From Octopus sinensis (lineage: Eukaryota), in assembly GCF_006345805.1 (NCBI RefSeq), contig NW_021834381.1, forward strand, positions 1 to 49,825: DNA of 49,825 nucleotides, written 5' to 3'. A program made the translations under genes and the position numbers. Below are positions 10,263 through 49,644 of the stretch, piece by piece. Below the pieces are notes generated by a model. It had not been told where the DNA came from and did no database searches. It worked only from the letters and a program-made list of their open reading frames with translations. Every line of letters begins with the position of its first letter. Position 1 is the stretch's first letter.

Positions 10263-10533
10263 CTAAACAAAAAATTGTAATTTATTACAAACACTGACCG
10301 TCAGATGGTTCCTGGCGATGGTTTTACAGGAATTGTCGCAGGGATGCCTTAATTGTTCCAAGGTCTGGTAGCTCTCCTCAAATTTCTTTGTGGCTAAGTC
10401 TGTTTGCCCATTAATCAGGTAACAATGTGCCAGCCATATCTGGATATCCACCAAGATATAATGAAGTGAACCAGACTTTGTCATATCATTCTCTGCGTCT
10501 ACCAAAGTATTCATCGCCACTAATAAATTTCCA
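10263..10533 (-). CDS. STAND-TPR gene, last confidently placed exon (ends at stop 10263 or at a donor after 10299)
   Basis: ttatttctAG|TGGAAAT, phase 2; GNLLVAMNTLVDAENDMTKSGSLHYILVDIQIWLAHCYLINGQTDLATKKFEESYQTLEQLRHPCDNSCKTIARNHLT, then either |gtcagt donor or VSVCNKLQFFV-stop. Confidence 0.8.
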
Positions 10534-10703
10534 CTAGAAATAATGAAAAAAAAACATGTAAACAATATATGTAAACAATGTAGCAAAAATATATAATAAA
10601 TCTTTTATCCTTTATTTTTTCAGTCATTTGATTGTGGCCATGCTGAAGCATCACCTGATGAATGATACACACAGACACACACACACACACAGAAAAACAC
10701 ACA

Positions 10704-10784
<81 letters not shown>

Positions 10785-11119
10785 GATGCTCTTCTTTCAG
10801 TTTCCATCTGCCAAATCTACTCACAAGTCTTTGGTTGGCACAAGGCTACGGTAGAAGACACTTGCCCAAAACGCAACATAGTAAGACTGACCCTGAAACC
10901 ATGTGATTGAGAAGTAAGCTTCTTACCACATTGCTACTACATACATACATACATACATATATACATATTATATATATATCCATATATATATATGTATATG
11001 TATATATTGTATATATATATATGTACACATATACATATATGTGTACATACATATATATATATATATTACACATATACATATATATATACATACACACACA
11101 CATTTATACATGTATGTGC

Positions 11120-11500
11120 TGGCATGGCTGTGTGGTACAAAGTTTCCTTTCCAACCACATGGGTCTGGGTTCAATCTCACTGCATGGCACCTTGAGCAGG
11201 TGTCTTCTACTAAAGCATCGGACTGACCAAAGCCTTGTGAGTGGATTTGGTAGATGGAAACTGAAAAAAGCCTGTCGTGTGTGTTTGCGTGCATATGTCT
11301 CTGTGTCTGTGTTTGTCCCCCCCAGCAGTACTTGACAAACCAGTGTTGGTTTGTTTACAACCCCATAACTTAGCAGTTCAGCAAAAAGCAACTTTTAGAG
11401 TAAGTACCAAACTGAGAACCAAAATATGTCCTGGAATCGATTCATTCTTCAAAATGGTGCCCCAGCATGGCCACAGTCTGAAGAGTGAAATAGGTAAAGG
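11120..11500 (+). mobile_element. SINE family A, older copy
   Basis: Head ggcatggctgtgtgg, domain caccttgagcaggtgtc and tail ccagcatggccacagtc. A further 5' half lies on the minus strand at about 10783-10930. Confidence 0.7.
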
Positions 11501-13147
11501 ATAAACGATATTTATAGATAACTTACATTTCATTGCTATCATGTTAAACTGTTGTATGTCCAAATTTGGCCAAACTCATTTTTTTTTTTTTTAATATTTA
11601 ATTTTGCTTGTAATAGGTGGATCTTTTGGTTAAACTATTGTATCTCCAGCTGCTTCAGATGCCATGATATGGAAATTGCATAACAATTTAGCATTTTTCA
11701 AAAGTGCATAAGTCCCACATACGACAATTTTACAAAAATATTTCTGACTGAAAACATCATACATGCATGGAGTTACGATTCTTTGCACCCAACAAAGTAT
11801 TATCATTAAGCTGAAACTGTTGCTAAAGTAAAAAGAAACAGAATGGTGAAACTGGGTTTTTTTTTTTTTCTAAAAAAGCAACGTTTTGGACTTACAACCC
11901 TCTTGCATAATAGCAATGATTTGTTTAGAGTGTTTTCAGTAAAAATATAACTGATATTTAAAACTTAATATTTAATCATATGTGTGTGTGTGTGTTTATA
12001 TATATATATGATAGAAAGAGAAAACTAAAGAGAATTTATGCATTATTGTCTAAGTACCCTTTCATGGGTGTCTAGAGGCAGAAAGATTACAGAATGGATG
12101 AAATACATACAAACCTGGGAAACACGGATTCATAAATCATTTAATTATGATGTATTATATGTGTCTCAGTTATTAATTAATTGTGGATAATTTGTAGGAA
12201 AATTTGTAAAAAGAGAAAATTAATTGTAAAAACAAGAAAAGGAAATGTTTTCTCAAAATGGAAACTTCATCAGTTAACGTACCAAAGTAATTTCTTTAAA
12301 ATGAGTTTTCTAGTTTACAGTATGTTTGTGTGACTCATTTATGGCGAAATTTCCAACAAAAATTTTCCCATGGCAAAAATATTCACAGCAAATTTTCTGG
12401 ACATGCATAAACACACATTTCCTCAGCCCTTTATCATTCAGATTACTTTGTCAAGAGTCATGCTTATATTTTCACATTTTATAAAATTAATCCTGTATTA
12501 TCTCGTAGTTTTGAGATTTTGAAGATGAGATTTTTTATTTTTTTAATGATATTGCAGGATGAGTGCAAGAGGTGGGATCTGGCCAGTTTGAACATAAACC
12601 AGGTTGAATATGTGTGGGCTTGCCCTGTTTTAATGTTAAAGGGTGAAAGAGATGTCAGTAATCAAAATTCTAAAAACATACAAACTACCACACACACCAC
12701 ACACACACAGTTATTTTTCCATAACAAATTCCTACAAAGAAGAGATTTTTTTCACAAAACACCCCCATAAAAAGTCCCATTCATTAGAAATATAGCTAAT
12801 AAACATGGCTTTAATTACTTTTTCAAAATATTGTTTTAAAGAAAAATCATTCAGTTAAAAAAAAAGCCTTACACACCCATTAGAAAAGGTGGGGAAAGAA
12901 ACAAAAGTAAAGGAATAAATAAAAAATAAAAGAAACAAAAAAATAAAGAAATGCCCACTACCAACTTTGGAAGAAACTATAAGGAAATTAAAAAAACCTC
13001 CTCCACTTATAATTGCAAGAAATACTAGCACCACACCTCAAAAATAACAAATACAATAAGTAATAGACACGAAAAGCTTAACTAATGAACAAACACAAAC
13101 AGGAGACCACACAAATATATAACAGGTTAAACAGATGAATACAAAAC

Positions 13148-13545
13148 TGGATGCCCATGGGAACTACAATATGCTGATGATTTTGCTCTTATTGTAGATC
13201 TGAAGCAGAATTGGAGAAGTTCCAGATTTGGAAGCAAAACCTGAAATCAAAGGGCATTAAAGTTAATTTAGCTAAGATTAAAAGTTGTTAGTGAGAAAGG
13301 AGATAAGACTCTCATTCTGGCTGGCAAATGGTCCTCTTCAATATGTAAGAAAGGAGTGAGATGTAATTCCATTCGCTGCACCAAGTGTAAGCTATGGACG
13401 CATAAGAGATGCAGTGGAATCACGGGAAGATTATCAGACAAGGTTGCTTTCGTGTGTGGCAGATGCACAGGAACAGTAAGTACTAAGCGCGCAAGGGACT
13501 TAAACTCTCTCAAATACCCAGGAGGCTCTCTGAGGTAGATTACAC
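13148..13545 (+). mobile_element. RTE LINE internal fragment (RT YADD region plus Cys-rich cluster)
   Basis: ggatgcccatgggaacta..tatgctgatgat (CPWEL.YADD) and RCNSIRCTKCKLWTHKRCSGITGRL...FVCGRCTG. Confidence 0.75.
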
Positions 13546-13659
13546 GAGGAGCAGGTTCCAAGAGAGGTGAATTATAAACGAATAAATAACAACAGATGGA
13601 TATTGTGTCATTTCACTACAGCTGTTTCCAACAAGTTTTTAATTGATTAATGGAGACAT

Positions 13660-13980
13660 TAAGGGGTAAAGACCCCCTTCGGTCATGAATGACCATGGGA
13701 TTGCACCTAGAAAGTTACCCTCCTAGACACAAGTCCGGGCAAGGTTGTTTATGGAAGACCAGCAGTCGCCCATGCATACCAGCCTCCCCTCTCCATGCCA
13801 CCAGTGTTATCCAAGGGAAAGACAAAGGTTGATACAGCTTGGCACCTGTGACGTCGCAACTCATTTCTACAGCTGAGTGAACTGGAGCAACGTGAAATAA
13901 AGTACTTTGCTCAAGAACACAACACGCAGCCCAGTCCGGGATTCGAGCTCACAACCTCACGATCGTAAGCTCGACATTAC
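13660..13980 (-). mobile_element. tRNA-derived SINE with tgttcttgagcaa domain and a distinct tail
   Basis: Head and central domain shared with the 42170-42476 copy; tail ctaggtgcaatcccatggtcatt also occurs at about 8105-8128. Confidence 0.7.
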
Positions 13981-14324
13981 ATCAATAGAAAAAGCCGTTT
14001 GCATCAGGTGAGTACACAAACCCCAACATTCAAAAGCTAATAGAATGTGCACCTTCATGATTCTATGACCCTTGCTGGTCGCAAAATGAATTTGTTAGTG
14101 CATATGGATAGTATTATAGGAGAAGATAACGCAATGTCGTGTGTGGTGTACCTAGGATTTATAGCAATGATGGAAGTCAGAGAACGTTGTAGTGGGGCAT
14201 TGGACTGTGAAGCATCTCATCCCTACAATTAAGATAGAGTTAATTTAATTTATCTTTTAATTCAATTCAACAAGCAGTTTTAAGGTTCAAAACAAAAGAT
14301 AGGGTCACCCAGTTATTTATATAC

Positions 14325-14744
14325 TCTTTACTCTTTTACTTGTTTCAGTCCTTTGACTGTGGCCATGCTGGAGCACCGCCTTTAGTTGAGCAAATCGACC
14401 CCGGGGCTTATTCTTTGTAAGCCCAGTACTTATTCTATCGTTCTCTTTTGCCGAACCGCTAAGTGACGGGGACGTAAACACACCAGCATCGGTTGTCAAG
14501 CAATGCTAGGGGGACAAACACAGACAAACAAACACATACACACACACACACATATATAAATATATATATACATATATACGACAGGCTTCTTTCAGTTTCC
14601 GTCTACCAAATCCACTCACAAGGCATTGGTCGGCCCGGGGCTATAGCAGAAGACACTTGCCCAAGATGCCACGCAGTGGGACTGAACCCGAAACCATGTG
14701 GTTGGTTAGCAAGCTACTTACCACACAGCCACTCCTGCGCCTAT
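14325..14744 (-). mobile_element. SINE family A, full-length young copy
   Basis: ataggcgcaggagtggctgtgtgg head to (gtaaaaga)n tail; near-identical to the 27961, 18306 and 48408 copies. Confidence 0.88.
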
Positions 14745-15537
14745 ATATTTATTTATTTAACAGTCTTCCATATGCCCCCTTTATTCCCAGGAAGATATAG
14801 AACAGGGATGGAGAGTTTGAGATTCTGCAATAGGAGATGGGTATGAAACAAGAAGATTGGTCATCATATCAATAATTAGATAGATAAAAAAAGTATACAA
14901 TGAAAAGCATAGAATAAAATAAAATTATCAGAAAGCAAAAAGGCGAAAGATTATAATTAAAAATTATAATAAAAAATGGGGGTTATAATAAAAGGATTTA
15001 GGTGGTAGTAGAAGCGGAATTGATAGTAACTTTGAAAATAATATTGTAAGAATTACAACGATAAATAAAAAGTAATTAGAAATAGAATAATCGAATAAAT
15101 TTTAAAATAAAATAAAATAAGATATTCCAATAGAATGAGGTAGAATAGCAAGTAAAGGGTAAATTGGAAAAATAACAATAATAATAACAAACCAATCGTA
15201 GAATGAGAGAATATTAATAAGCAAAATTCTATAAATAAGTATAAGATTATGAGATGAATAAAAATATATGAAAATTAATTTATGACATAAAATTTAAAAT
15301 ATATATAATATAATATAATAAAAAATATCAAATACATGTATTAATCATAGTAAGATGATTTGCAATTAATTTTAGTAAGGTGTAAATTCAAAGTAGTATT
15401 ATTAGCATACGACAGTCTACACCCATATCAGCTGTTGGAATATGGTTGAGGTCTAAGAATTTAAGAATTATGTTTCTTATAATGTCAAACCAAATGTTAT
15501 TAACTTTATCTTTATTATTTCTAGGGTTTTGGGGATG

Positions 15538-15575
<38 letters not shown>

Positions 15576-15901
15576 CATTAAATTAGAGATAAAACCACTA
15601 TTAGGCAAATCAAACAGTGAAAAACATAAGCCAATACATAAAATTAATTTTAAAATATTAAAGTTAAAAATTAAAAAATTATTTATATAATTTAAACTTA
15701 TAAATTTTAAAATATATATATACAAATATATATATATATATATATGTATGTATATTTTTATATTTATATATTATTTTGTTTATTAATTTATTATTTATTA
15801 TTATTTAAAAAAAAATTTTTTTATTTATTTATTATTTTTTATATATAAATATCAAAAGTATTAAAAGTTTAATAAAGATAAAGAGTATTCCCTAATATCA
15901 T

Positions 15902-15972
<71 letters not shown>

Positions 15973-16017
15973 ATATTTATTATATAGAAGGAGCTTCTAC
16001 AGGACTAGAACTGTTTC

Positions 16018-16065
16018 ATTCAAGAGAAATCTTCAGGAAGCGCTTCCTGAAGATTTCTCTTGAAT
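16018..16065. repeat. Perfect 48-bp palindrome
   Basis: attcaagagaaatcttcaggaagc|gcttcctgaagatttctcttgaat. Confidence 0.95.
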
Positions 16066-16135
16066 AAATTAATTTTACTCTGCTATGTATTGAGTACCTT
16101 ATTTACTGTGGTTAACCCCGAATCAACCCGGGACC

Positions 16136-16200
<65 letters not shown>

Positions 16201-16209
16201 TTATATATA

Positions 16210-16377
16210 TAAGCAATTAAGGGTTTAGCAACGAATTGCCTTACCGCACACCGAATTTAGAAATAGCAGTCAAAGAGATTATAGCTATTTCTTCTACTAA
16301 AAGGGAGATCTCTTTGACTGCTATTTCTAAATTCGGTGTGCGGTAAGGCAATTCGTTGCTAAACCCTTAATTGCTTA
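16210..16377. repeat. Perfect 70-bp inverted repeat with 28-nt spacer
   Basis: Arms 16210-16279 and 16308-16377 are exact reverse complements by eye. Confidence 0.93.
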
Positions 16378-16730
16378 GTATTACTTAAATTTTCCTCGAA
16401 TGAGGCTTTTACATGCCGAAGACTACTTGGTGTAATTGATAATTATTCCAAATTAATTAATTTCACCCTTCATTGTTACTTATATTTATATATATATATG
16501 TTGTCATATTTTATGAAAAATAAATAATATTTTATAAATTGCCTCTCCATTTTCTAATTCTTTAAATATATGAATATATGAACCATGGTTTATATAGTTA
16601 CCTTATAGTTGAACTTTCAATGGATTGGTAACTAATTAGTTTTTCATTGGATTTTATCATCCCTTAATGAGGTTTATGACTTTTATTTGAATTTATATAT
16701 ATATACATGTTATATATACATATATATATG

Positions 16731-16788
<58 letters not shown>

Positions 16789-17050
16789 ATATATATATAG
16801 TTGCAATTTACAAAAAAAACAAAAGATGAAGACAGGTGTATGAACAACAAACAGGTGTATAATTTGATGCTCAAAAAGTGAGAAAGTCGTTTACATTCGA
16901 GTCTACACTCTTCAACAGAAACGAACAAGAGAAAATAAACAGAGAGCGAATAAAAGAATGCTTTAGTAGCTAGCAGTCGATCATGGTGGCTGATATGTAT
17001 ATATTTCATATATATATGTGTATGTATACATACATACATACATACATACA

Positions 17051-17123
<73 letters not shown>

Positions 17124-17430
17124 CTAGCAGGATCGCCCGGCGTTGCTCGGGTTTGTAAGGGAAATATCTATATAAGCATTTTTAGAGAGTTACTTCCCTT
17201 ATATAACCCGAGCAAAAATCATTAAAAATGCGGAAAAGTTATGGTAAATTTTTTTTTAAATCGTAGATTCATCATAGACGTGCGCTAATACCCAGAAGGG
17301 CTCGATATGAATGACGACTATAAGATACCCGCTTTTGGTTAAACTGCACTGCAAAATGTGAGAGTAGTTAGGAATCTAAATCGGAGGAGACAGAGTCTCA
17401 CACACACAACTTCAATTTTATATATAAAGA
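17124..17430 (-). mobile_element. Non-autonomous Helitron, 307 bp, intact ends
   Basis: Minus strand A|TCTTTATATATAAAA ... CCCGAGCAACGCCGGG hairpin ... CTAG|T. Confidence 0.85.
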
Positions 17431-17673
17431 TTATATAATATATAAGTATAACATATATATAACACATACCTACATACACCACACACACACATATGTGTGT
17501 GTGAGTGTGTGTGTGTGTATACACATATGTATTCAAGTATTTGGATTGTTATTCTACAATACATTGGTTTAATAACTGTTATTTACATAATAATTATTTG
17601 ACATGACAAGTAAATTTCATAGGGTTTTTCTTTAAAATGTTCTATTTGAATATATTTGCAATTTTTTTTCTTT

Positions 17674-17709
<36 letters not shown>

Positions 17710-17914
17710 AACCAGATTCACAATAAGGTCAAGGGAATTAATTAACACCACTCAACACCTGCAAAAGTCAACAGACGTTCCAATGCACATGATGCAAAAT
17801 GACATGCAAAGAGCTGGCTTTGCAGTCAGACATTTCATATTGGCACAAAAAACTCTAAGTGGTTTTATCAACAGCACCAGACCCACTTGCAGAAACAGAA
17901 CAGCTACAGTAACG

Positions 17915-18010
<96 letters not shown>

Positions 18011-18305
18011 AATACTACTACTTCATTAACAACTATGCATAATTAAATTTCACTGACCATGTGCCTGAATGTAGTCTCCTTGGCCAATTCTGTTAGTTAA
18101 GCTGAAATTACTTCTGGGCTTCCATCTTGGAAATGATAGCAGAATGGATGAAGTTAGAAATGGAACTTTTGCATGAGATTGTATTGTTGAAGATTCCATC
18201 ATCCTGGCTAAGAATTCATTCAGTAGCAGACAACGTGTAAACTAATTTATCTTTGTCTTCCGAAAAGAAGCCTTTTCTGTACCCTCAAAATACTAATTTC
18301 GGACA

Positions 18306-18703
18306 GCAGGAGTGGCTGTGTGGTAAGTAGCTTGCTAACCAGCCACATGGTTCCGGGTTCAGTCCCACTGCATGGCATCTTGGGCAAGTGTCTTCTGCTA
18401 TAGCCCCGGGCCAACCAAAGCTTTGTGAGTGGATTTGGTAGACAGAAACTGAAAGAAGCCTGTCGTATATATGTATGTGTGCGTATGTGTTTGTGTGTCT
18501 GTGTTTGTACCCCTAGCATTGCTTGACAACCGATGCTGGTGTGTTTACGTCCCTGTCACTTAGCGGTTCGGCAGAAGAGACCGATAGAATAAGTACTGGG
18601 CTTACAAAGAATAAGTCCCGGGGTCGATTTGCTCAACTAAAGGCGGTGCTCCAGCATGGCCACAGTCAAATGACTGAAACATGTAAAAGAGAGTAAAAGA
18701 GAG
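18306..18703 (+). mobile_element. SINE family A, full-length
   Basis: Same head, body and tail as the 14325 copy. Confidence 0.85.
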
Positions 18704-19088
18704 CAGTTACAGGTAACTGCACCAGTATTCTATATATATAGAAAATGCGGTGTCTGCCTGCTCTTTGGGATAGAGGCCCAGTTACAAGCAGGGATTGCAT
18801 GTGAAACAACTGTTCATTAGCTGGTGCCTCAGTACTTGGAAGAGCACAGTTCAAATGGTTGAGCCAAAAGTATAGCAACTAATATTGATCTCTGGCTTCT
18901 TGCCACCAATGAGAAGTAATATCAATTAGTGTGAAGGTCTCATGTATTGAGAGATGGCATGTGGTCAGTAAGAGTAAGGACTCTCAAGATCATATGGTCT
19001 AGTAAGCCCCCCACTGGTGCCATTCCAAATTGTGGTCTGTTGTGGGTGCTAAATGAAGGCTGTAAGACTATTGGTACAGAGCAGAAAT

Positions 19089-20225: not shown

Positions 20226-20264
<39 letters not shown>

Positions 20265-20448: not shown

Positions 20449-20501
<53 letters not shown>

Positions 20502-21777: not shown

Positions 21778-21810
<33 letters not shown>

Positions 21811-21813
<3 letters not shown>

Positions 21814-22725
21814 TTTGGCCTTACCATCGGCCTGAAAAAGACAGAGATCATGGGCCAGGACATCGGAGGGGTCCCCAGCATCAGTGTCGGTGACCACAGC
21901 TTGCAGGTGGTGAACGAGTTCACTTACCTGGGATCGACAGTCTCCAGCAACCTGTCCCTCGAGCCGGAGCTGAACAGATGGATTGGGAAGGCTGCTGCTG
22001 CCATGGCTAAGCTCTCCAGGAGAGTGTGGGAAAACAACATGCTCACAATAACCACCAAGATCGCAGTGTACCGAGCCTGCGTGCTGAGCACCCTACTCTA
22101 CGGCAGCGAGAGCTGGACAACATACACCCGGCAAGAATGCCGCCTCAGCGGCTTCCACATGCGGTGTCTTCGACGGATCCTTGGCATCTCCTGGAAGGAC
22201 TGAGTACCAAACGGAGTCATCCTAGAATAGACTAATATGCCAAGCATGCATGCCCTCCTCGTGCGGAGACGACTGCGCTGGCTCGGACATGTCTGCCACA
22301 TGCAGGACGGTCGCATGCCTAAAGACATCCTGTACAGCGAACTCACCACGGGATCCCGACCCAAGGGACGTCCATAGCTACGATACAGGGATGTGTGCAA
22401 GCGCGACCTGAGGACTGCCAACATCTGTGTGGACACGTGGGAGGTAACAGCTGCTGACCGCTCTGCCTGGCGTCGGACAGTGAGGAAAGGCGTTTCCATG
22501 GCTGAGGAAAGGAGAGCACAGCTGTGGTCGGACAGGTGGGACAGGAGGAGGACAACTGCAGCAACACCCCACACGTACCCATCGATGTTCGTGTGCAGCA
22601 ACTGTACCAGGGACTGCCACTCTAGAATTGGACTGTTCAGTCACAGCAGACGCTGCTCATCATCAAAGTAGGCCCCACCCTTGGCGCGACCCATTGTCTA
22701 TCAAGACAGATGGGAGAAAGAAGAA
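21811..22725 (+). mobile_element. BovB-like RTE LINE, 5'-truncated 3' portion of ORF2 with 3'UTR
   Basis: FTYLGSTVSSNLSLEPELN...YRACVLSTLLYGSESWT...RRILGISWKD, RRRLRWLGHV, and terminal C2H2-like FVCSNCTRDCHSRIGLFSHSRRC; a few in-frame stops. Confidence 0.88.
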
Positions 22726-27960: not shown

Positions 27961-28344
27961 TCTTTTACTCGTTTCAGTCATTTGACTGCGGCCATGCTGG
28001 AGCACCGCCTTTAGTCGAGCAAATCAATCCCAGGACTTATTCTTTGTAAGCCCAATACTTATTCTATCAGTCTCTTTTGCCGAACCGCTAAGTGACGGGG
28101 ACGTAAACACACCAGCATCGGTTGTCAAGCAATGCTAGAGGGACAAACACACACACACACACACATACATATATATATACATATATACGACAGGTTTCTT
28201 TCAGTTTCCGTCTACCAAATCCACTCACAAGGCATTGGTCGGCCCGGGGCTATAGCAGAAGACACTTGCCACGCAGTGGGACTGAACCCGGAACCATGTG
28301 GTTGGTTAGCAAGCTACTTGCCACACAGCCACTCCTGCGCCTAT
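27961..28344 (-). mobile_element. SINE family A, full-length young copy
   Basis: Near-identical to 14325-14744 with a small internal deletion. Confidence 0.88.
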
Positions 28345-29627
28345 ATACATACATATATATTGTCAGTCGTTCATATATCTAGAAAAGAGCCATACTCTAA
28401 AACATTAGAGCAGTAATATTTTTTTTTAGGTAGTTAAAAGTTATGGCCAGTCATAGAGTGACCATTGGCTTCACACCTGTAAAGCACTTAGCAGTATAGG
28501 TAACACGTGAAACTCAAATGGCTGAAGGTGCTTAACCTCTCTACCATTACAGGAAGAAATACTTGTATGTAGTGGTCAGTTAGTTTGTAAACAGAAAACA
28601 TGAATGCCCATGGTGCAGGAAGAACAGGCTTATCCCCCATACATCGGATCCAGCCCTGGTGATATTCAAAGAAGTTGCAGTGAGTCTATTTAATGAACAG
28701 GAACTCCAAGTTTGAGTAGGAAATGTTTTAGATGAGGGCATTGACTGAATACCTCTTTTCTGGATTTTAAAAAAGGTCTCCAAGTGTTTTAGGATTCTTG
28801 CCTTCTCTGCTAAACAAAGCTTACATTGCTTGCTCCCATTTATATAAGTCCCCAGTTGTTCAAGGAGCTACCATTTAATTATGTATGGGGTTCATCCCTC
28901 TTTTAAGTGCCACATATGGAACTTAAAAGAGAAAGGACCCCTATACATAATTGAATACTTTTTCATTAGAATTATTAGTTTTCCTGAGCCTATGTATAAA
29001 TGTTAATGTATGTATATTGGTATTAGATATCTTGCTTCAGTTTGTCTCTAAATCTTGTGAATAAGATAGAGATGCTTTATGAGGCATAGGGCAAGTTTTG
29101 TTGGAGCTAAAATTTTGCACAGGAATTGCTTTGTCAGTGATGGTCATACTACCATACTCATCTACAAGTTGATACTCACCATGTATGTATGTATGTCATT
29201 ATTCAGTTTTATTTCAAGATTTCTAGCCAATAGAGAAAGAGCTGGTTTCTAACCTAGATCCAAGGATCCTTCATTGAAATTTGAACATCAACAACAGGAT
29301 ATTTTTGTTTGTATGTATGCATGCATGAATGTATTCGTGTATGTATGTATGTATGTATGTATGTATGTATGTATGTATGTATGCATGTATGTGTGTATGT
29401 ATGTATATGTGCAGATTTGTATGATTTGTTTTATGTATGTATTCTCATGAATATAGTTGCATATCTAGACATGCTCATATATATTTAAATAATAAACTTC
29501 TAGAAAGTTTTACAGATTTTTACAGTTCCAGTGATGGATTGGATCTGTAGTCTTCGAATTAGCGTTCCCCTTACCGATTTTGAGAAGCCTAATTTCTCAA
29601 GATTGGTATGTATGTATGTATGTATGT

Positions 29628-31020: not shown

Positions 31021-31134
31021 TTAGGTAATATGACCAAGCTAGTGTACTTATGATTATGCCAAAAGTTGGGTGAGATGGGCAGACTGGATCCGCCACTAAT
31101 TCATCTGTAATTGCAATCCCTTTGGCAATAAGGC
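31021..31134 (-). CDS. STAND-TPR gene exon (TPR-like; absent from ORF track)
   Basis: ctattttAG|GCCTT ... CCTAA|gtaagt; phase 1 to 1; open frame LIAKGIAITDELVADPVCPSHPTFGIIISTLAWSYYL, with the HP linker typical of TPR_12-type repeats. Confidence 0.82.
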
Positions 31135-33419: not shown

Positions 33420-33890
33420 TAGCAGATGGTTTTTGTTGTCTAAGTGACCTAATTAGCAGTGGAGGAGGATGTTCTGAAAGCTTAATTGCTAGAATAAGAA
33501 CAAGCTGGACAAAGTTAAGAGAAATTTACATCTGTTTGTAACATAAGAGCTTCCAGAGTGAAAGGCAGAATGCATGATGCTTGTGTATGAACAATAATAA
33601 TTCATGGTTGTGAAACTTGGGCCATGAATGTAGAGAACATGTGAAAATTACAAAAAATAAGGCTAGCATTTCCCAATGGATGTGCAATGTTGATATGCGT
33701 GTGCAATGAGGAAAAAATTGGACATTAGAAGCATCAAGTATAGTGTACCCGAGGAAGTCACACTGGTATGGTCATTTGATGCAGACAAATGAGGACAGCT
33801 GCATAGAGAGGTGCTGATCCCTAAATGTGGATGAAATCTGAGGAAGAGGGAGACCGAGGAATATTTGGAATGAACTGGTGAAAACCCTTT
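33420..33890 (+). mobile_element. Old RTE ORF2 C-terminal fragment
   Basis: Decayed homologue of 34520-35000 (GGGCSES..ARI, HG.ETWA, LHWYGH-like segments). Confidence 0.65.
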
Positions 33891-35265
33891 GACAGGGTCC
33901 CCCAATCCCTTATATGGTGGTCAATGTGGAAACTAGGGATAGACAAGTGGTTAGTGAGAGCTGCACAAGCCATGCTCAGGAACACGACCAGTAAGGTGAG
34001 AGTTGGCAACGAGTACAGTGAAGAATTCAGTGTACAAGTAGGGGTGTACCAAGGACTGGTCCTCAGCTCCCCCTTGTTCATCATAGTCCTCCAGGCAATA
34101 ACAGAGGAATTTAGGACAAGCTGCCCCTGGGAGCTCCTCTGTGCTGATGACCTTGTTCTTATAGCTGAATCACAACCAGAACTAGAGAAGTTCCAGGTAT
34201 GGAATTGAAGGGCCTTAGAGTTAACTTAGCAAAAACCAGTCTTAGTAAGCTGGAAGACAGACAAATCACAAATCCCTTCAGGTAGATGACCCTAATCAAC
34301 CTGTAGAAAATGCATAAGTACAAACTCCATAAGATGTACTTGGTGTAAGCTATGGACACATAAGAAGTGCAGCAATATCAGAGGAAGGTTAACAGGGAAA
34401 ATCGCTTTTGTGTGTGGAAGATGTACAGGTAAAATAAACACCGAAAATGCACAGAAAACAGATTCCATCAACTGCCCGGTGGGGGGCAGCTAGAGGTAGT
34501 AGATAGCTTCTGTTATCTAGGTGACCAAGATAGTAGCGGATGTGGATGAGCCAAGAGCGTAGCTATGAAAATAAGATTTGGCTGGGCAAAGTTCAGAGAG
34601 CTCCTATTCTACTGGTAACAAAGGGCCTCTCTCTCTCAGAGTGAAAGGCAATTTGTGTGATGCCTGTATGTGAACAGTTTTATGCTGTATGGCAGTGAAA
34701 TATGGGCTGTGACAGTTGAGGACATGCATAGGTTTGAAAGAAATGAAGCCAGTATGCTTCGTTGGGTGTGTAATATCAGTGTGAATGTTCATAAGAGTGT
34801 AAGCATCTTGAGAGAAAAGTTGATAATAAGAGGCATCAGATGTGGTGTGTAAGAGAGATGACTGCACTGGTATGGTCATGTGATGCATATGGACAAAGAC
34901 CACAGTGTAAAGAAGAGCTGTTCTCTGAGTGTGGAGGGAACCTGGTGTAGAGGTAGACCCAGGAAGACATGGGACGAAGTGGTGAAGCATGATTTTCAAA
35001 CTTTGGGCCTCACAGATGCAATGACTAGTGACTGAGACCTTTGGCAATGTGCTGTGCTCGAGAGGACCAGTTGATCTAAGTGAAATCACAGTCATGGCAG
35101 GTGCTGGTGTCACATTACTGGCATCCACGCCAGTGGGACGTAAAAAGCACCTTTCAAGCGTTCAGCCTCATGGAGACAATGACCAAGACCTTTGGCATTT
35201 TATCATGCTTAAGAAGAAGACCCATCAAACCAAGCAAAACCACAGCCATTGTGACAGATACTAGT
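33890..35265 (+). mobile_element. 5'-truncated RTE LINE (RT domain to 3'UTR)
   Basis: KLGIDKWLVRA...VGVYQGLVLSSPLFIIVLQAITEEF..CPWELLCADDLVL, Cys cluster and LYGSEIWAVT, then a 3'UTR; frameshifted. Confidence 0.85.
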
Positions 35266-41465: not shown

Positions 41466-41619
41466 CTGAATGCTTAATAAGAGACTGACCGATCTTGTAT
41501 TGAAGGAAAGCTTGTTCCCCTTTGGAGCCGAACAGGCAAGACATATCGTAGCAACACTGGTAAAAGCTGACTGCTCTATTAGGATGCAGAGAAATAATCT
41601 TACCAGCTTTCTCACAGAG
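41466..41619 (-). CDS. STAND-TPR gene exon (start of TPR-like region)
   Basis: ctaaacAG|CTCTGT ... TCAG|gtaatt; phase 0 to 1; LCEKAGKIISLHPNRAVSFYQCCYDMSCLFGSKGEQAFLQYKIGQSLIKHS. Confidence 0.82.
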
Positions 41620-41700
41620 CTGTTTAGAGAGTAATAAAAAGAGAGTAGACATCAGATGAAGAAACAACAATGATAAGAGCAAGTAGTAGTAGTAGTAGTT

Positions 41701-41740
<40 letters not shown>

Positions 41741-42169
41741 CTGTTAATGGTATCTGTTAGGCGAAGTGGTTGATTGGCCTAACTGAGTATTGAGATGCTT
41801 GGATGTTTCACTGATGTGGCTAGTATCCCTACAAGATGGTGATGGTAGTTCCAGGTAAAAAAAAAAAAACTTGCACAGAGAAAATCCCAGATGAATGACG
41901 ATATTGGGAAGGAGTATAAGGTATAGTAGGGGGTGGTGGGATGACAGAAGGATAGATGTATGAGTCTGGAAGTCCAGAGAGGATACAGTACCAATCAGTT
42001 TTGAAAAATTGGCTGGTATCACGTCACAGTACCAGTTCACTGTAGTAGTGGTAAAAAGACAGAGTGAGGAGAGACAGCATGTCTGTGAGCCAAAAGTTAG
42101 AATGAGTTGACAAGTGGCTTTATATGAATTAGTCAAGTGGCCATTATTATTAATTGTGGTGTCCTGTCT

Positions 42170-42476
42170 CACTTGAAGACTCCGCCAGTTACGACGACGA
42201 GGGTCCCAGCTGATACGATCAACGGAACAGCTTGCTCGTGAAATTAACGTGCAAATGGCTGAGCATTCCACAGACACGTGTACCCTTAACGTAGTTCTCG
42301 GGGATAATCAGCGTGACACAGTACAACAAGTACAACTCATTTTTGCCAGCTGAGTGGACTGGAGCAACGTGAAATAAAGTGTCTTGCTCAAGGACACAAC
42401 GCGTCGCCGGGAATCGAACTCACAATCTTACGATCATGAGCCGAATGCCCTAACCACTAAGCCACGCGCCCTCACA
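42170..42476 (-). mobile_element. Mosaic tRNA-derived SINE (gtgtccttgagcaagacac domain with family C tail)
   Basis: Head gagggcgcgtggcttagtggttaggg...gagttcgattccc; tail gaactacgttaagggtacacgtgtc...cctcgtcgtcgtaac. Confidence 0.8.
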
Positions 42477-43252
42477 CTACCATATGAACGCGCCCTGTCT
42501 CACTACCATATGAACAGTAACTTACTTTCAGACACTCCAGTTCACCAAGGAATTAAGAAGTAGCATAACATTTTAAAACTGATGTTCAGCTGTTTAGCTT
42601 ACAAGTGTTTTGCTAACTTGCAGACATGGTGGAGAATTTTATTTCAGAACTTTTGAAAAAAACAGACATTTTTACTACAGAGCCAGAGGCAGTTTCAGGT
42701 GGGTTGATATCAAAAACGGTTAAACTACCAAAATATAACTAACTCAACAAATACTATCGTAACTGTATAACGATGGCCTTCACTCAGACATCTTGACCTC
42801 AATACTTTCTATAACGCTGAAGTTTTACAACTAATATATGATGAGATTTACGCACATGTTTAGTTCTTGCAATTTATCAACTACGAAACTGTTCAGGTCT
42901 CTGCTCTTTCACTCTTATTCCCATCTTACAAATTGTTTTGTCATGACAAAATGATTTTGGGTTGCAAAATATTTTTCTTGATACAAAATGATTTCCTCTG
43001 ACAAAATTCAGTTTTTCTTTCCAGTGCATAGATCTTATATGTTTTTATTTTATATATACATACAACAATCCCTCGACTATTGTGGGTGTTTTGTTCCAAA
43101 ACCACCCCCATGGTAGGGGAAAATCCATGAAATAGAAACAGTACTGTACAGTATTTTTAAAAAATTATTTTATATAATTTGTATATATTTTATTATAAAT
43201 GCAAAACAACACCATGGAGGAATCAATGTAAGCTTAAATAATAATATGCAAT

Positions 43253-43640
43253 GGAAATGGAAGCACTCCGTCGGTTACGACGATGAGGGTTCCGGTTGAT
43301 CCGACCAACGGAACAGCCTGCTCGTGAAATTAACATGTAAGTGGCTGAGCACTCCACAGACACGTGTACCCTTAACATAGTTCTCAGGGATATTGAGCGT
43401 GACACAGAGAGTGACAAAGCCAGCCCCTTGAAATACAGGTACAACAGAAACAGGAAGAAAGAGTGAGAGAAAGTTGTGGTGAAAGAGTACAGCAGGGATC
43501 ACCACCATCCCCTGCCGGAGCATCGTGGAGCTTTAGGTGTTTTCGCTCAATAAACACTCACAACGCCCGGTCTGGGAATCGAAACCGCGATCCTACGACC
43601 GCGAGTCCGCTGCCCTAACCACTGGGCCATTGCACCTCCG
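43253..43640 (-). mobile_element. SINE family C, full-length with 13-bp TSD
   Basis: TSD aataatatgcaat at 43240-43252 and 43641-43653. Confidence 0.9.
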
Positions 43641-43827
43641 AATAATATGCAATAGGTGAACCACAATATGGCATACACACATACATATATATATATATAT
43701 TGATAAAAATGGTAAGACAACAAAAGAATGAAAGAGACCTCAATATTTTGTAAATAGACGAATTTATCTGTAAATGTCATATATTTATATGCAAATGTCA
43801 TTTTTCATAGCATTTTTCTGATGGCCG

Positions 43828-43888
43828 GATAACTGAAGAGATGGCGGCGGGGATTTCCACCTCGGCATCCGAAACTCAGAGTTTTATC
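43828..43888 (+). ncRNA. Putative type I hammerhead ribozyme (CUGAAGA core)
   Basis: GAUAA/UUAUC stem I, CUGAAGA, GAUG/CAUC stem II (extra C before GAAA), ACUC-A-GAGU stem III, GUU site. Confidence 0.55.
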
Positions 43889-44184
43889 ATGGCTACTGAA
43901 TAATTGTCACATAGTACATTTACAGATATATATATATAATTTCTTACAGTTTGTTTTGTGATTTGCTTTTTTTAACAAAAAATGTTTCTGTTATTGTTTG
44001 ATCCTCCTCCTCCTCCTCCTCCTCATTATCATCATCATCATCATCATCATCATCGCTATGACTACAACTATCAACGCAATGCGTCAGTTATATTGTGCAG
44101 CCCCTTCTTCAGGGAGCACAACACTGGTTTCTACTGCTGTGTTTTTCTGTTGATTCTGTTATTAACCTTTCAGTATTCAGATTA

Positions 44185-44215
<31 letters not shown>

Positions 44216-44814
44216 CCTCTCTCTCTCTCTCTCTCCCTCCCTCTCTCTCTCCCTCCTTCTCTCTCTCTCTCTCTCTCTCTCAAATGTAAAGCTTATTTAT
44301 CTACTTTCTCTTGCAACAATCATGGATTATTTTGTAGCTTTGAGATTTTGATGATTCACACAGTTCTATATTCAAGAAGTGAGGAATTATGTACATTGTT
44401 TACATTATTTACATTATTTACATTTGCTGGATAACAAACAAGATGAGGACAAATATCTGTCAAATGTAAATAATGTAAATAATGTTGGATGGTTCAACTG
44501 TTAATTTCTAGAATGATGTTGTAGGGTTGTTGTGAACAGCCAGACCTGGCCAGTCCAAACATAAAACAGGCGGAATATTTTAGCTGGATATGGTCAGCTT
44601 GGATGCTAGTTAGCTAAACAATGAGCAATCACCCAACACAGCAGGACTAAAATTCTATTAAAGAAAGTCTGTCTAATTGCACAAGATGACTTCAGTAACA
44701 AAGAGTCTTCAAAAGCAATGCCAACTTCAAGAATACTCAAAATTTAGCTTACTCATACTCTACAGACTAAAATGAAAGACAGGGAATCATAATTGTCATA
44801 ACTACCAATATCGG

Positions 44815-44975
44815 TGCCAGTGCAGCTGTGTGGTAAGAAGTTTGCTTGCCAGCCACATGGTTCTGGGTTCAGTCCCACTGTGTGGCACCTTGGGCAAGTG
44901 TCTTTTACTGTAGCCTCAGGCCAACCAAAACATTGTGAGTGGATTTGGTAGACGAAAAATGAGAGAAGCCCATTG

Positions 44976-45014
<39 letters not shown>

Positions 45015-45430
45015 GAAATTTACAGAAAAACAAAAGATGAAGACAGGTGTATGAACAACAAACAGGTTTATTAGTTTGACGCTCAGGAAGGTGAGAAAGT
45101 ATTTTACGTTTCAAGCGTACGCTCTTCATCAGAAAGGAACACAAGGAAATGAACAGAGAGAGAATAAAATATCTTGTTGATCAAGCAATGTGTATGTCTT
45201 TGTGTCTGTGCTTGTCTCCCCTACCTCTCCCCCTACACATACATGTGACAAACAGTGTTAGAATGTCATGTATATTGCCATAACTTAGCAGTTCAGTAAA
45301 ATAGACCAATAGAATATTCATCAGGCTTCAAAAAAAAGTCCTGGGGGTGTAATTCACCCAACCAAAGTTCTTGAAGATGGTGCCCCAGCATGGCCATAAT
45401 CTAATAGCTGAAACAAGTAAAGAGTTAAAA
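44815..45430 (+). mobile_element. Old SINE A split by a Penelope-type insertion at about 44980-45180
   Basis: 5' half at about 44815-44975 and 3' half at about 45190-45430 flank (TA)n plus the pLTR-family copy. Confidence 0.6.
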
Positions 45431-45444
45431 AATAAAAGGTAATA

Positions 45445-45860
45445 GGTGCAGGAGTAGTTGTGTGGTAAGAAGCTTGCTTACCAACCACATGGTTCCAAGT
45501 TCAGTACCACTGCGTGGTACCTTGGACAAGTGTCTTCTACTGTAGCCTCAGGCCAACTGAAGCTTTGTGGATTTGTTAGACAAAAACTGAAAGAAGCCTG
45601 TCATTTGTGTGTGTGTGTGTGTGTGTATGTGCATGTATATGTGTGTATGGTTGTGCGTCTGCGTTTGTCTCCCCACCATCACTTGACAACTGATGTTGGT
45701 GTGTTTACATTCCTGTAAATTAGCGGTTCAACAAAAGAGACTGATAAAATAAGTACTGGGCTTACAAAAAATAAGTTCCAAGATCAATTTGTTTGACTAA
45801 AAATGCGGTGCTCCAGCATGGCCGCAGTCAAATGACAGAAACAAATAAAAGAATAAAAGA
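45445..45860 (+). mobile_element. SINE family A, older full-length copy
   Basis: Complete head-to-tail match; its tail ends about 40 nt from the donor of the large exon. Confidence 0.8.
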
Positions 45861-45896
45861 ATCTAAAACTAGAGGAAAGGTAAGAAGATTACTTAC

Positions 45897-46898
45897 AGCA
45901 TAAAGGTTTTGAAAATACAAACAGTCACCATCTGGGCCGTGAAGCACTTTGCCAAACAAAGTTAGAATTGTGTGTTTATGGTCAGCAAGAATATTGTGTA
46001 CCTGTTGAAATTTGTTGTCCTGGAAATAGCTTGCAGCCGTTAGAAATATTTCTCCAGTCATGTGATTAAAATTCAAACGTGCAAGGCATGAGGACCTCAC
46101 ACTGTAGAATGATTGGTTAACTAGCGATTGGTTGACTGGTTGACTGGTTGACTGGTTGTCTGGCCATAACTGGCTGCAAGCTTGTCTGATGACTGGTTGT
46201 AAGCTGTAAGTTTGGTCTTCGTTTTCAATGAGTAATCCTGATTTCTTGATGACATGACTCGGATTTTCTAAGCTGTTTTCGCTGCAGTTAGCCCTTTCAG
46301 CTGCTCTTTGAAGATAGTCATACGAGAACTTGACATCTGAATGAGACAGTATGGCCAGTAATTTTTGAACAGGTTGTGATGTTCTTTTTAACATACCTTT
46401 AATATATTTAAAATATCTATCTGGAATTTCAAATTTTTCAAAACAATCTTCAACACCTTTTTCGTTAGGGAAAAGTGACAATGTTTTAGCAAGTTCGAGT
46501 ATCATTAAAGGGAATCCACAACACCAATCAAGAAGTGTATTAACCAACCCCTCACAGCTAGAAGGCAAATTTGATGAGAACTCACAGTCAAAGAGTTCTC
46601 TCGCTTTTGATTTTCCTAAAGGCAACACCTGGAATTCTTTTGTACAAAGTTCATTGGTCAATAATGGTTCAAGCCCTCGAAACACCAGTATAAAAGTGGT
46701 CTCTGGAAAAGTGATACTGGAATTTCTCATGAACTCGAGTTCTTCAGATCTTTTAGTGGGTAGTAAAGTGTCAAAATGATCGAAAACAATGATATTTCCC
46801 CGTTTTAATTTGCCAAGATTTTGGCAATCAACATAATTTGTTTTACAACAAAAATATTGGACTTCTCTTGATGTCTCTGTCTTGACTACCTTCAGAAC
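45897..46898 (-). CDS. STAND/NB-ARC-TPR gene, 1002-nt exon (Walker B, helical domain, winged helix)
   Basis: Lies in the 370-aa ORF; acceptor tttcAG|GTTCTG and donor TATGCT|gtaagt, phase 0-0; motifs IIVFDHFD (Walker B), VLPLGKSKARELF, WCCGFPLMI (GxP) and YSLQPVIRQ. Confidence 0.92.
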
Positions 46899-47226
46899 CT
46901 GAAAAGAAACAATATAGTAACTGTGTACGTAAATATACATATATGCTTATATATAAATATACATAGCTCTTATTTCTAGCAATTTAGATGGTATTTTTAT
47001 CACCCTTCTTACATTTAGTGACAATTATAATTCTTCTTTTTGGTGAAACATTGCAAACTGCTGTTTATATATATATATATACATATATACATACACACAC
47101 GTATATATACATATATATATGTGTGTGTTTATATATATATATATATAATATTATATATATATATACATACACCACACACATATATATGCATATATATATG
47201 TGTGTGGTTGTGTTAATATATATATA

Positions 47227-47257
<31 letters not shown>

Positions 47258-47258
47258 C

Positions 47259-47307
<49 letters not shown>

Positions 47308-47367
47308 ATATATATATATATATATCACACACATATATGTATATGTATATGCATATATGTGTGTGTG

Positions 47368-47411
<44 letters not shown>

Positions 47412-48039
47412 TAGATCCAGTTCAATTAAGTACTTAAATTGAAGGACCTTGTTAGGACAAACTAATTTGTTCAGTCAGACAATATCAGGTGAGTATCAAA
47501 CGGCTGTACGGCTGATAATTTGCTTACCACTTGTGATAGTATTTTAATAATACCATCCCTATATTTATATATATATGTGTGTGTGTGTATAAATAATTAA
47601 ATATTTACATAGTCAACTGGATTCGCTTGTGCTAATAATGACTAAAAAGTTAGTGATAATTTCATGTAATCATGAATTGTCTTTATTCCATGTTAGTAAG
47701 AGAAAGAATATTTTGTAAAAGAATGAGGAAGTAAATAAATTTCAGGGGAGGTAATCAGTGACTGTCATTATTAGAAGCAGGGGAGGTAATCACACCGCTC
47801 CTATTTTATTTTAAGCTGAACTGATAATATTGAAATGAAAAAGATATAAATTTATGACTGTTTTGGACGGCATCGAAGCACTAACATATATTTCCCCTTT
47901 GATAGCAAAAACAATACACCAAACTGTTCCTCTACCCCATCAGTGTGCACCATCACTGCTTGATTAAATGCTTTTTGAAATGTGTTTTTTATTATTATTA
48001 TTATTATTATTATATTTTATTATTGAGTGAGAGAGCAGT

Positions 48040-48100
<61 letters not shown>

Positions 48101-48407
48101 GGTGGTGAGCTGGCAGAATTGTTAGCATGCCGGGCGAAATGCTTTGTGGCATTTTATCTATCTTTTATGTTCTGAGTTCAAATTTCACCAGGGTCGACTT
48201 TGACTTTCATTCTTTCACAAATTGCATATAGGTTCATGTCTTGGTTTCATTTCACACAAATCCTGTTCCTATTTACTTCTTCTGACCTTAGTATTCTTTT
48301 CATTTTTTGGACTTTGTTTTATGTCTTCTAGGGTCACCAGTAACTCGAGTACCACATTCCACATCACATTTTATATTTCTCCTTGTGATCTTAATGCTGC
48401 AGTTACC

Positions 48408-48809
48408 ATAGGCGCAGGAGTGGCTGTGTGGTAAGTAGCTTGTTTACCAACCACATGGTTCCGGGTTCAGTCCCACTGCGTGGCACCTTGGGAAAGTGTC
48501 TTCTACTGTAGCCTCGGGCCAACCAAAGCCTTGTGAGTGGATTTGGTAGACGGAAACTGAAAGAAGCCCGTCGTATATATGTATATATATATGTGTTTGT
48601 GTGTCTGTGTTTATCCCCCCAGCATCGCTTGATAACTGATGCTGGTGTGTTTATGCCCCCATCACCTAGCGGTTCGGCAAAAGAGACTGATAGAATAAGT
48701 ACTGGGCTTACAAAAGAATAAGTCCCGGGGTCAAGTTGCTCGACTAAAGGTGGTGCTCCAGCATGGCTGCAGTCAAATGACTGAAACAAGTAAAAGAGTA
48801 AAAAGAGAG
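48408..48809 (+). mobile_element. SINE family A, full-length
   Basis: ataggcgcaggagtggctgtgtgg head to gtaaaagag tail. Confidence 0.88.
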
Positions 48810-48824
48810 TATGTCTTCAAATGC

Positions 48825-49184
48825 CTCGCAGTGTTTCGATATCAGCCTGGACAAACCATCCACTTGCCCTATGGCAACTATTCCATTTTGTAATCATCAT
48901 TCAATAATGTAGTGCCTCATCGCTATCATCTATTTGCTGTGTGTAGGTTGACATTCCTATTTTAGAACTGTCTATTAACAGTAGCGGGTGATGGTCAGTT
49001 TGTAGATAGAAACTTCTTCCATGAATAAATTTATGGAATTTTTTTCACATCGAATATGAATTGCTAATGCTTCCTTTTCTATCTGGCTATAGTTCCTTTC
49101 AGCTGATAATAACAATCGTGATGCATGGGCTGTAGTCTTTTTACTCCCATCAGCATATTTGTGTAGAAGCACAGACAAAACAGC
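48825..49184 (-). mobile_element. Ty3/gypsy pol fragment (RNase H)
   Basis: [42 protein letters not shown], then a frameshifted TDH.PLL-like segment. Confidence 0.8.
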
Positions 49185-49395
49185 TAAAATACAACACACA
49201 GAAATGAAAGAGAAAATTAGGAGAGGGTATTACAGGAGAATTAGACTAATTTTAAGCACTGAACATAATGCTAAAAATAAGATAATAGGGATAAACACGC
49301 TAGTTGTACTAGTCATAAACTACGGCTTTGACATAATAAACTGGAAGATTAGTGAATTGAGAAACTTAGAAAAACTACGTAATGGTTTTAGTTGA
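49185..49395 (+). mobile_element. R4/Dong-like non-LTR fragment
   Basis: [30 protein letters not shown]...INYGFDIINWKISELRNL matches the post-RT region of R4/Dong-type elements. Confidence 0.7.
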
Positions 49396-49495
49396 AAATC
49401 CTTTCAACTTCAGTCTCCTGATTGGAATCAAACAAGGGTCAGACAACAGCAGTGACATTAGTGTGACAGTCAACAACAACAAAAGTAAAACTTAC

Positions 49496-49644
49496 TTGCT
49501 TTATTAATTCTGTTTTCCCAACAAAACACAATCCATAAATCTGTATGATCGTAATGTAACTTGTGATAGCCTTCCGCAAATCATCAATCATCTTCTTGTG
49601 ATGTTCCCGGAATAATTCAGGAAGCATTTTGGATTCTGATGAGC
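49496..49644 (-). CDS. STAND/NB-ARC-TPR gene, first exon in window (internal exon, Walker A)
   Basis: Pyrimidine-rich acceptor ttttcttcgtAG, donor AAGCAA|gtaagt; phase 1 to 0; encodes SSESKMLPELFREHHKKMIDDLRKAITSYITIIQIYGLCFVGKTELIKQ with a GxxxxGKT P-loop. Confidence 0.88.

Follow-up and report, generated by a model that had tools for sequence, protein, structure and literature searches.

What protein is encoded by an octopus gene that spreads ten coding exons over most of a scaffold, and for which the public domain annotation lists tetratricopeptide repeats (TPRs) only? The window analysed here is the entire 49,825-bp scaffold NW_021834381.1 of Octopus sinensis (contig G000:C10852), and its minus strand carries LOC115230831, a real and intact gene which is annotated in RefSeq, though as an "uncharacterized protein", with four isoforms of 776 (X1), 774 (X2), 651 (X3) and 649 (X4) amino acids. 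Very probably, the gene encodes a very divergent, fast-evolving protein of approximately 775 residues, present as a single copy, in which an NB-ARC-type switch belonging to the signal transduction ATPases that have numerous domains (STAND) is followed by a helical arm, some eight TPR pairs like those of kinesin light chain and a short Cys/His-rich tail, with no effector domain. The switch comprises a P-loop nucleotide-binding domain, a helical domain 1 with the GxP motif and a predicted winged helix.

With the search for exon boundaries on the minus strand limited to AG acceptors and GT or GC donors, all four RefSeq isoforms (P0006, P0007, P0004 and P0003) could be recovered exactly from the window, with introns of the GT-AG type. 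This bears out the original prediction, made from the sequence letters, of a multi-exon minus-strand gene at this place. The nine exons proposed between 49644 and approximately 10263 agree with RefSeq exons 1-9, as do the phase-1 acceptor at 49645/49644 and the donors at 31021 and 27068. The 3' end had been misplaced: the stop at 10263 was called because the exon 9 donor at 10299 was read through, and exon 10 was missed. The splice sites of the first two exons are strong (exon 1, acceptor ttttcttcgtag/GC and donor CAA/GTAAGT; exon 2, acceptor tttcttttcag/G and donor GCT/GTAAGT). Exact-product look-ups with the O. sinensis isoforms and P0001 returned no transcript contigs. Splicing nevertheless appears to be backed indirectly by two relatives. 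The Octopus vulgaris orthologue, represented by two models of 782 and 785 amino acids on a 50.6-Mb chromosome, has the same exons and a 97% identical protein. P0010, a relative of 1195 amino acids, has no introns on Logan contigs of 4-5 kb (SRR29271470 and SRR29271484) and aligns over the exon junctions of LOC115230831 with small gaps only; the Argonauta relative P0008 is likewise collinear.

The nucleotide-binding oligomerisation domain (NOD, the ATPase region) is encoded by the first two exons. Coding exon 1 (49627-49496, minus strand as all exons below; the whole in-window exon is 49496..49644, with the phase-1 acceptor at 49644 and the RefSeq ATG at 49627) corresponds to residues 1-44 of P0006/P0007. 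It contains a pre-P-loop helix and the Walker A motif GLCFVGKT (49534-49511), which follows the GxxxxGK[ST] consensus and is conserved in P0010 and P0012. Coding exon 2 (46898-45897, 334 codons) contains the rest of the NB-ARC-like NOD and then a Q/S/N-rich linker, which is disordered, and the part where the helical arm and the first TPR begin. In the Walker B motif IIVFDHFD (46793-46770) the first Asp is kept and the second acidic residue is replaced by His, with another Asp at +3; the paralogues have DD, KD or DC. The sensor-1 Arg (RNBS-B) is found in ILVFRG (46679-46677), where ILVFR aligns with LVTSR of NRG1. GxP and PL..eA..LF are NB-ARC signatures. Here GxP is CGFPLMI (46517-46509), with the G and P invariant across the family, and the PL..A..LF motif is VLPLGKSKARELF; both align with NRG1, Sr35 and MLA13. 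The MHD position (46202-46194) reads LQP, its histidine being replaced, and relatives have VQP, VQE or MLP. A winged helix is predicted from a beta-hairpin (residues 275-285) and its flanking helices, and it aligns to the winged helices of PH0952 and P0034. Walker A, GxP, PL..A..LF and many of the TPR motifs are conserved out to Argonauta, P0010 and P0012.

Three independent lines, namely profile search of the PDB, profile-to-sequence alignment and fold comparison, assign the first 300 residues to the NB-ARC clade of STAND proteins. A profile alignment of the NOD region only of the family (A2) was searched against 177,635 PDB sequences, and the five best matches were all STAND proteins: PH0952 (E 2.2e-4), NRG1/At5g66900 (4e-4), Sr35 (two matches, 2e-3) and MLA13 (2e-3). 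The NRG1 alignment is collinear through the P-loop, Walker B, sensor-1 Arg and GxP. The hhalign comparison of A2 with Pinctada P0034, a protein with 43.8 bits on Pfam NB-ARC, covered 284 columns at a probability of 98.2% (E 5e-14) and extended into the winged helix. The AlphaFold model of the full-length protein has a mean predicted local distance difference test score (pLDDT) of 70.8, mostly 65-86 in the NOD and 75-90 in the TPRs, and its top Foldseek match is the archaeal STAND-TPR protein PH0952 (6mfv; E 1.2e-9, 753 columns). For the NOD modelled alone, the best matches are NRC4, NRC2, WRR4A, Roq1, NRC3, RPP1 and CED-4, with template modelling scores (TMq) of 0.48-0.54.

The same architecture is much less visible to standard searches with the protein itself. 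Pfam gave nothing significant on single exons; on the full protein TPR_2 reached 37.1 bits (cutoff 27) over three stretches and TPR_12 reached 29.8 bits (cutoff 30.1). NCBIfam made no NOD assignment on the full protein, and phmmer against the PDB sequences found no match. NB-ARC homology of the protein itself is thus indicated only transitively or by profile. The original proposal of a STAND NTPase with a TPR array behind it is in this way upheld by the PDB profile search, the alignment to a Pfam-positive NB-ARC protein and Foldseek, with a STAND-TPR protein as the best full-length match of the spliced product. Of the features that had been listed, Walker A, a Walker B with its first Asp, GxP, a predicted winged-helix region and the helical pairs (eight, where seven to eight were expected) are all present, and no profile search assigned the protein to a known non-STAND housekeeping family. 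The expectation for HMMER held for the TPRs (TPR_2 is above its cutoff), whereas Pfam NB-ARC stays below cutoff on the protein itself.

The TPR half contains 16 paired helices, i.e., eight pairs, arranged as a superhelix in the AlphaFold model, and its profile matches kinesin light chain KLC1 at E 1.4e-13. TPR-like helices continue in coding exon 3 (41619-41466), and coding exon 4 (40238-40091) carries the best Pfam TPR_2/TPR_12 unit (residues 458-488). The TPR helices of coding exon 5 (38597-38488; YCEAAIEIEIDD...MCQG) are conserved in Argonauta P0008 and P0010, and those of the 114-nt coding exon 6 (31134-31021; HPTFGIIISTLAWSYYLK) include an HPTFGI motif conserved in Argonauta. Coding exon 7 (LEKNRWVVPMCYIADL) has two donors and extends over 29912-29775 in isoforms X2 and X4 or 29912-29762 in X1 and X3, and coding exon 8 has two alternative acceptors (27179-27068 or 27172-27068); both encode TPR helices. 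The last TPR pair (IWLAHCYLINGQTDLATKKFEE) is in coding exon 9 (10533-10299) and gives a kinesin-light-chain-type TPR alignment. In isoforms X3 and X4 an alternative terminal exon (23276-23237) cuts the array short after exon 8.

It had been supposed that the gene is incomplete at its 5' end and that an effector domain lies upstream. Only 181 bases of contig remain upstream of the exon 1 acceptor, and the upstream region was taken from the orthologous O. vulgaris locus (L022, OX597836.1:25,418,541-25,500,941). There, the annotation gives a choice of two first coding exons, which supply no more than 2 and 5 codons, each with one extra base. One (L022 10001-10007, ATGCAAA/GT) is located 14.6 kb upstream of the P-loop exon and adds MQ(S); the other (L022 17252-17267, ATGGAGACACAACTCG/GT) is located 7.3 kb upstream and adds METQL(G). 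No effector-like open reading frame (ORF) of at least 90 residues was seen in the 24.6 kb upstream in O. vulgaris, as judged by eye with no profile scan; the ORFs of this length are mostly microsatellite read-through and repeat-like fragments. Relatives P0010 and P0012 also start only about 40-70 residues ahead of their P-loops. Because of the tiny first exons in O. vulgaris, the RefSeq ATG inside exon 1 at 49627 and the short N termini of the relatives, the supposition of an upstream effector is not supported, and the predicted protein is an effector-less NB-ARC-TPR that starts with the NB-ARC domain.

At the other end, coding exon 10 (7446-7267) encodes a Cys/His- and Glu-rich C-terminal tail of 59 residues and the stop codon. 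Its motif V..CD[IL]C..L[KR][ED]HN (here CDICLNLKEHN) is conserved in the Argonauta relative, where the exon 10 motif VADCDICLNLKEHN is matched by VSQCDLCQSLRDHN. The CxxC is CDIC here, CDLC in Argonauta, and CTVC and CIYC in P0010 and P0012, with further Cys and His residues after it. AlphaFold confidence is low across the tail, which may be a small zinc-binding module. A LINE-like ORF (7418-7897, minus strand) overlaps the first bases of exon 10. That the exon is an exonised tail of a long interspersed nuclear element (LINE) was considered and ruled out because the tail motif is conserved in Argonauta.

How widely is this protein distributed? Among 1.84 billion representative proteins, phmmer found 33 matches, five of which reach at least part of the ATPase region: Octopus bimaculoides P0002 (77-79% identity), Argonauta hians P0008 (33%), the transcript-like P0010 (23%, E 2e-35, residues 15-715), Octopus P0012 (LOC118767588) and P0024 from ENA. 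No orthologue was found in this set outside octopods, P0010 and P0024. There was no fungal or bacterial match to the NOD at E <= 1e-3, and the matches outside the family lie in the TPR region. Look-ups of homologous proteins returned Octopus orthologues, TPR-only proteins or Logan sequences, and no named NOD relatives. The label "cephalopod-type" used in the original prediction is shown only for octopods, together with P0010 (Logan) and P0024 (ENA). In O. bimaculoides large parts of the gene are open at 77% identity. The orthologue is seemingly split there into at least two RefSeq gene models on one 37.7-Mb scaffold, P0002 (LOC106878300, the NOD) and P0054 (LOC106878306, the C-terminal TPR). 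An origin by horizontal gene transfer from bacteria or fungi was rejected on the NOD having no bacterial or fungal match among these representatives, the ten GT-AG exons and the exon 1/2 boundary shared with paralogues.

When the 2.72-Gb genome assembly (13,516 contigs) was searched at E <= 1e-3, the big exon (exon 2) matched only itself, and LOC115230831 is therefore single-copy. Paralogues of the P0012 type are numerous. No fewer than 12 NOD exons that share 81-91% identity with the O. vulgaris LOC118767588 query protein are found at 3.88-4.34 Mb of contig C23 and on the unplaced contigs C476, C766 and C2724, and more divergent copies are found on C26 (14.04 Mb) and C12701 (loci L002-L013 and L016-L021). 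In-frame stops are absent from only three of the 12 paralogous NOD exons examined. C476, C766 and C2724 carry identical loci, for which assembly redundancy is a possible reason. The C23 cluster looks like a birth-and-death tandem array, although it might also be an assembly error. Separate matches to residues 1-62 and 53-405 suggest that the paralogues have the exon 1/2 boundary in common with LOC115230831. The count of paralogues called for at the outset thus has two sides: the gene itself is single-copy, and its P0012-type relatives have at least 12 NOD exons, most of them with stops.

Compared with O. vulgaris by the Nei-Gojobori method, the gene has 8.5 synonymous and 23.5 non-synonymous changes (dS 0.018, dN 0.013), which gives a ratio of non-synonymous to synonymous rates (dN/dS, omega) of 0.70. 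For the NOD omega is 1.5, a value that comes from seven changes (six non-synonymous and one synonymous). Coding divergence is 1.4%, and the introns are 95-99% identical. The gene seems to be fast-evolving, and strong purifying selection is unlikely.

Several points weigh against the assignment to NB-ARC-type STAND switches or complicate it. Pfam NB-ARC (PF00931) gives the protein 11.9 bits (E 0.14) against a cutoff of 23.5, over the P-loop only, and among the relatives P0010 reaches 22.4 bits and P0012 23.0 bits, slightly short of that cutoff. The E-values of the PDB profile matches are only modest. The NOD-only model is matched in Foldseek by RuvB, ORC, Cdc6 and RFC at E 3e-9 to 1e-6, values like those of the NOD-like receptors (NLRs) with which they are interleaved. 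The Walker B DH and the LQP at the MHD position may make hydrolysis and ADP locking atypical; slow hydrolysis or an altered ADP lock would be a speculation. A dN/dS of 0.7 on 32 substitutions is as compatible with relaxed constraint as with diversifying selection. It is very improbable, however, that the NOD is an AAA+ initiator or clamp-loader module (ORC/Cdc6/RuvB-like) fused to TPRs, as these fold matches and weak P-loop matches to NCBIfam Orc1/Cdc6 and Pfam ATPase_2 might suggest. The template modelling scores of such proteins are lower (0.36-0.41 vs 0.48-0.54 for NLRs), the five best PDB profile matches are all STAND, the alignment to the NB-ARC protein runs at 98% probability through the winged helix, GxP and PL..eA..LF are present, and the best fold match of the full-length protein is STAND-TPR. 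Decay is a less remote but still improbable explanation. The gene would then be a relaxed copy, a pseudo-ATPase drifting towards a pseudogene after duplication from the clustered family, in line with its omega (0.70 overall and 1.5 in the NOD), with a coding divergence near the intron divergence of 1-5%, and with the loss of both the MHD histidine and Walker B's second acidic residue in a family whose paralogous NOD exons mostly contain stops. Nevertheless, O. sinensis and O. vulgaris both have all ten exons open and with canonical splice sites, O. bimaculoides has large parts open, the Walker A, GxP, PL..A..LF and many TPR motifs are kept as far as Argonauta, P0010 and P0012, and RefSeq has four spliced isoforms.

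The alternative with the greatest claim accepts a genuine NB-ARC-TPR protein and doubts its function: it is possible, though on balance rather doubtful, that the protein has a non-immune role, either as a scaffold or switch in trafficking, cilia or the cytoskeleton, like NPHP3 and kinesin light chain, or in the control of transcription or signalling, like MalT. The absence of a death-fold, TIR, CARD or other effector at both ends, TPRs that are closest to kinesin light chain, weak P-loop matches to NPHP3_N and the single-copy state are all compatible with such a role. Fast evolution and tandem birth-and-death are typical of immune or conflict genes and not of conserved housekeeping scaffolds. 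It is in this respect that the non-immune role fits less well, with a dN/dS of about 0.7, 33% identity already within octopods, tandem birth-and-death in the family, and no orthologue beyond octopods, P0010 and P0024 among the representatives searched.

For LOC115230831 the role considered most likely is that of a sensor or adaptor within the cell, of an innate-immunity or cell-fate type; the immune-sensor role is suggested because of the family architecture, fast evolution and tandem turnover. The behaviour of STAND proteins such as PH0952 (PMC6468293), MalT (PMC4381067) and the NLRs of plants and animals may serve as a model of how it would work. At rest, a closed monomer with ADP bound would be expected, in which the arm and the TPR sensor lie folded against the NOD; such autoinhibition is proposed because PH0952 shares this order of NOD, arm and TPR. 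Once a peptide or protein ligand occupied the TPR groove, the autoinhibition would be lifted, and nucleotide exchange and then oligomerisation would follow. Because there is no effector domain, the output might depend on the Cys/His/Glu-rich C termini being brought together or on a partner that is recruited. As a tentative extension, octopods could carry an unrecognised, Pfam-invisible family of effector-less NB-ARC-TPR proteins, made up of LOC115230831 and a birth-and-death cluster with at least a dozen paralogues, which would be fast-evolving intracellular immune sensors signalling by the C-terminal CxxC tail or by paired helpers in place of an N-terminal death-fold or TIR domain; this larger picture is more doubtful than the architecture of the protein.

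The assignment to the NB-ARC type adds candidates to the cephalopod repertoire of innate-immune or cell-fate sensors. It also indicates that whole divergent lineages of NLR-like genes can go unnoticed in standard Pfam screens, and LOC115230831 provides a way into an octopod NB-ARC-TPR family that such domain screens do not see. With its missing effector and altered Walker B and MHD motifs, the protein is a test case for effector-less STAND signalling. Full-text literature searches found no description of NB-ARC-TPR genes in octopus or other cephalopods.

Apart from the gene, the window is rich in repeats. Intron 1 (49496-46898) is 2.6 kb long in O. sinensis and 8.0 kb in O. vulgaris (L022 24755-32765), a difference that points to a large insertion or deletion, probably of a transposon, between two very close species. 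Fragments of non-LTR (long terminal repeat) retrotransposon ORF2 are found at 33882-34208 (+), 21796-22203 (+) and 22378-22671 (+) in introns, the fourth being the LINE-like ORF at 7418-7897 (-); one has a Pfam RVT_1 match (E 4.6e-7), and the others are LINE-tail-like by eye only. Two similar PHD-finger-like ORFs (…CxxCKLWTHKxCSxIxGRL…FVCGRCTG…) on the plus strand, at 13272-13538 and 34296-34493 in different introns, are presumably copies of one transposable element, and one of them adjoins the reverse transcriptase fragment at 33882-34208. A short interspersed repeat with at least seven copies on both strands (6326-6577, 10846-11400, 14478-14846, 18247-18555, 28096-28416, 44753-45019 and 48403-48816) sits in introns and flanks; its translation contains …HLPKVPCSGTEPGTMWLVSKLLTTQPL…, and it is likely to be a high-copy short interspersed nuclear element (SINE). 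Microsatellites of the (TA)n and (CA)n kinds are also unusually abundant in the introns. Downstream of the gene there is a Pif1-type helicase fragment (444-911, plus strand; Pif1_2B_dom, E 5.9e-11), probably a Helitron remnant, and a satellite of 62-66 bp with about 10 copies (3082-3756), which occupies approximately 4.8 kb at the O. vulgaris site (L022 75,600-80,400).

How does the octopus protein compare with known systems? It does not group with NPHP3: NPHP3_N scores 12.9 bits (cutoff 24.8) over the P-loop only, and TPR_NPHP3 has no match in the Pfam scan. In metazoans the term "bona fide NLR" has been reserved for NACHT-LRR proteins, and NACHT-TPR proteins are found in several animals and non-animal eukaryotes (PMC3879445). 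By that usage LOC115230831 is not a bona fide NLR, having no NACHT or LRR in the Pfam scan, a NOD of the NB-ARC type and no N-terminal domain. Fungal NB-ARC-TPR NLRs and bacterial Avs (AVAST) proteins, with which the gene was originally compared, likewise have a STAND NTPase first and a TPR-like sensor after it. This domain order holds for the octopus protein; the analogy is weakened because both groups carry N-terminal effectors, which are absent here, and PADLOC found no family at E <= 10 with the full protein, including no Avs model. The effectors of fungal NLRs include HET, HeLo and PNP_UDP, often together with highly similar internal repeats, and those of Avs include nucleases and proteases. 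In contrast to the highly similar repeats of fungal NLRs, the octopus TPR units score weakly in Pfam, which fits divergent repeats.

With the NB-ARC of plant NLRs, APAF-1 and CED-4 the octopus NOD aligns collinearly at the P-loop, RNBS-B Arg, PL..A..LF and GLPL. These proteins differ in having LRR or WD40 in place of TPR as the sensor and in their CC, TIR or CARD domains, which are absent here, and MHD is unconserved in the octopus protein. PH0952 carries an N-terminal DNA-binding effector. This protein of Pyrococcus horikoshii (6mfv, PMC6468293) shares the NOD-arm-TPR layout, but it is archaeal, only 13% identical and superposes poorly as a whole (TM ~0.3, root-mean-square deviation 28 A). 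The same order of a NOD followed by TPR_12-type repeats is also found in Pinctada imbricata KAK3097977.1 (NB-ARC domain-containing) and in the NACHT/NB-ARC-TPR proteins of the cnidarians Hydra and Acropora (PMC7642931), and lineage-specific tandem expansion is common to these mollusc and cnidarian NLR-like proteins and the octopus family. Compared with them, the octopus NOD is too divergent for Pfam NB-ARC, N-terminal death, DED or TIR domains are missing, other residues stand in for the MHD histidine and the second acidic residue of Walker B, and the protein has a CxxC tail of its own. Nothing is overturned by this, since NB-ARC/NACHT-TPR proteins were known from cnidarians, other molluscs, fungi and prokaryotes; LOC115230831, a gene already annotated, joins them as a very divergent and effector-less addition.

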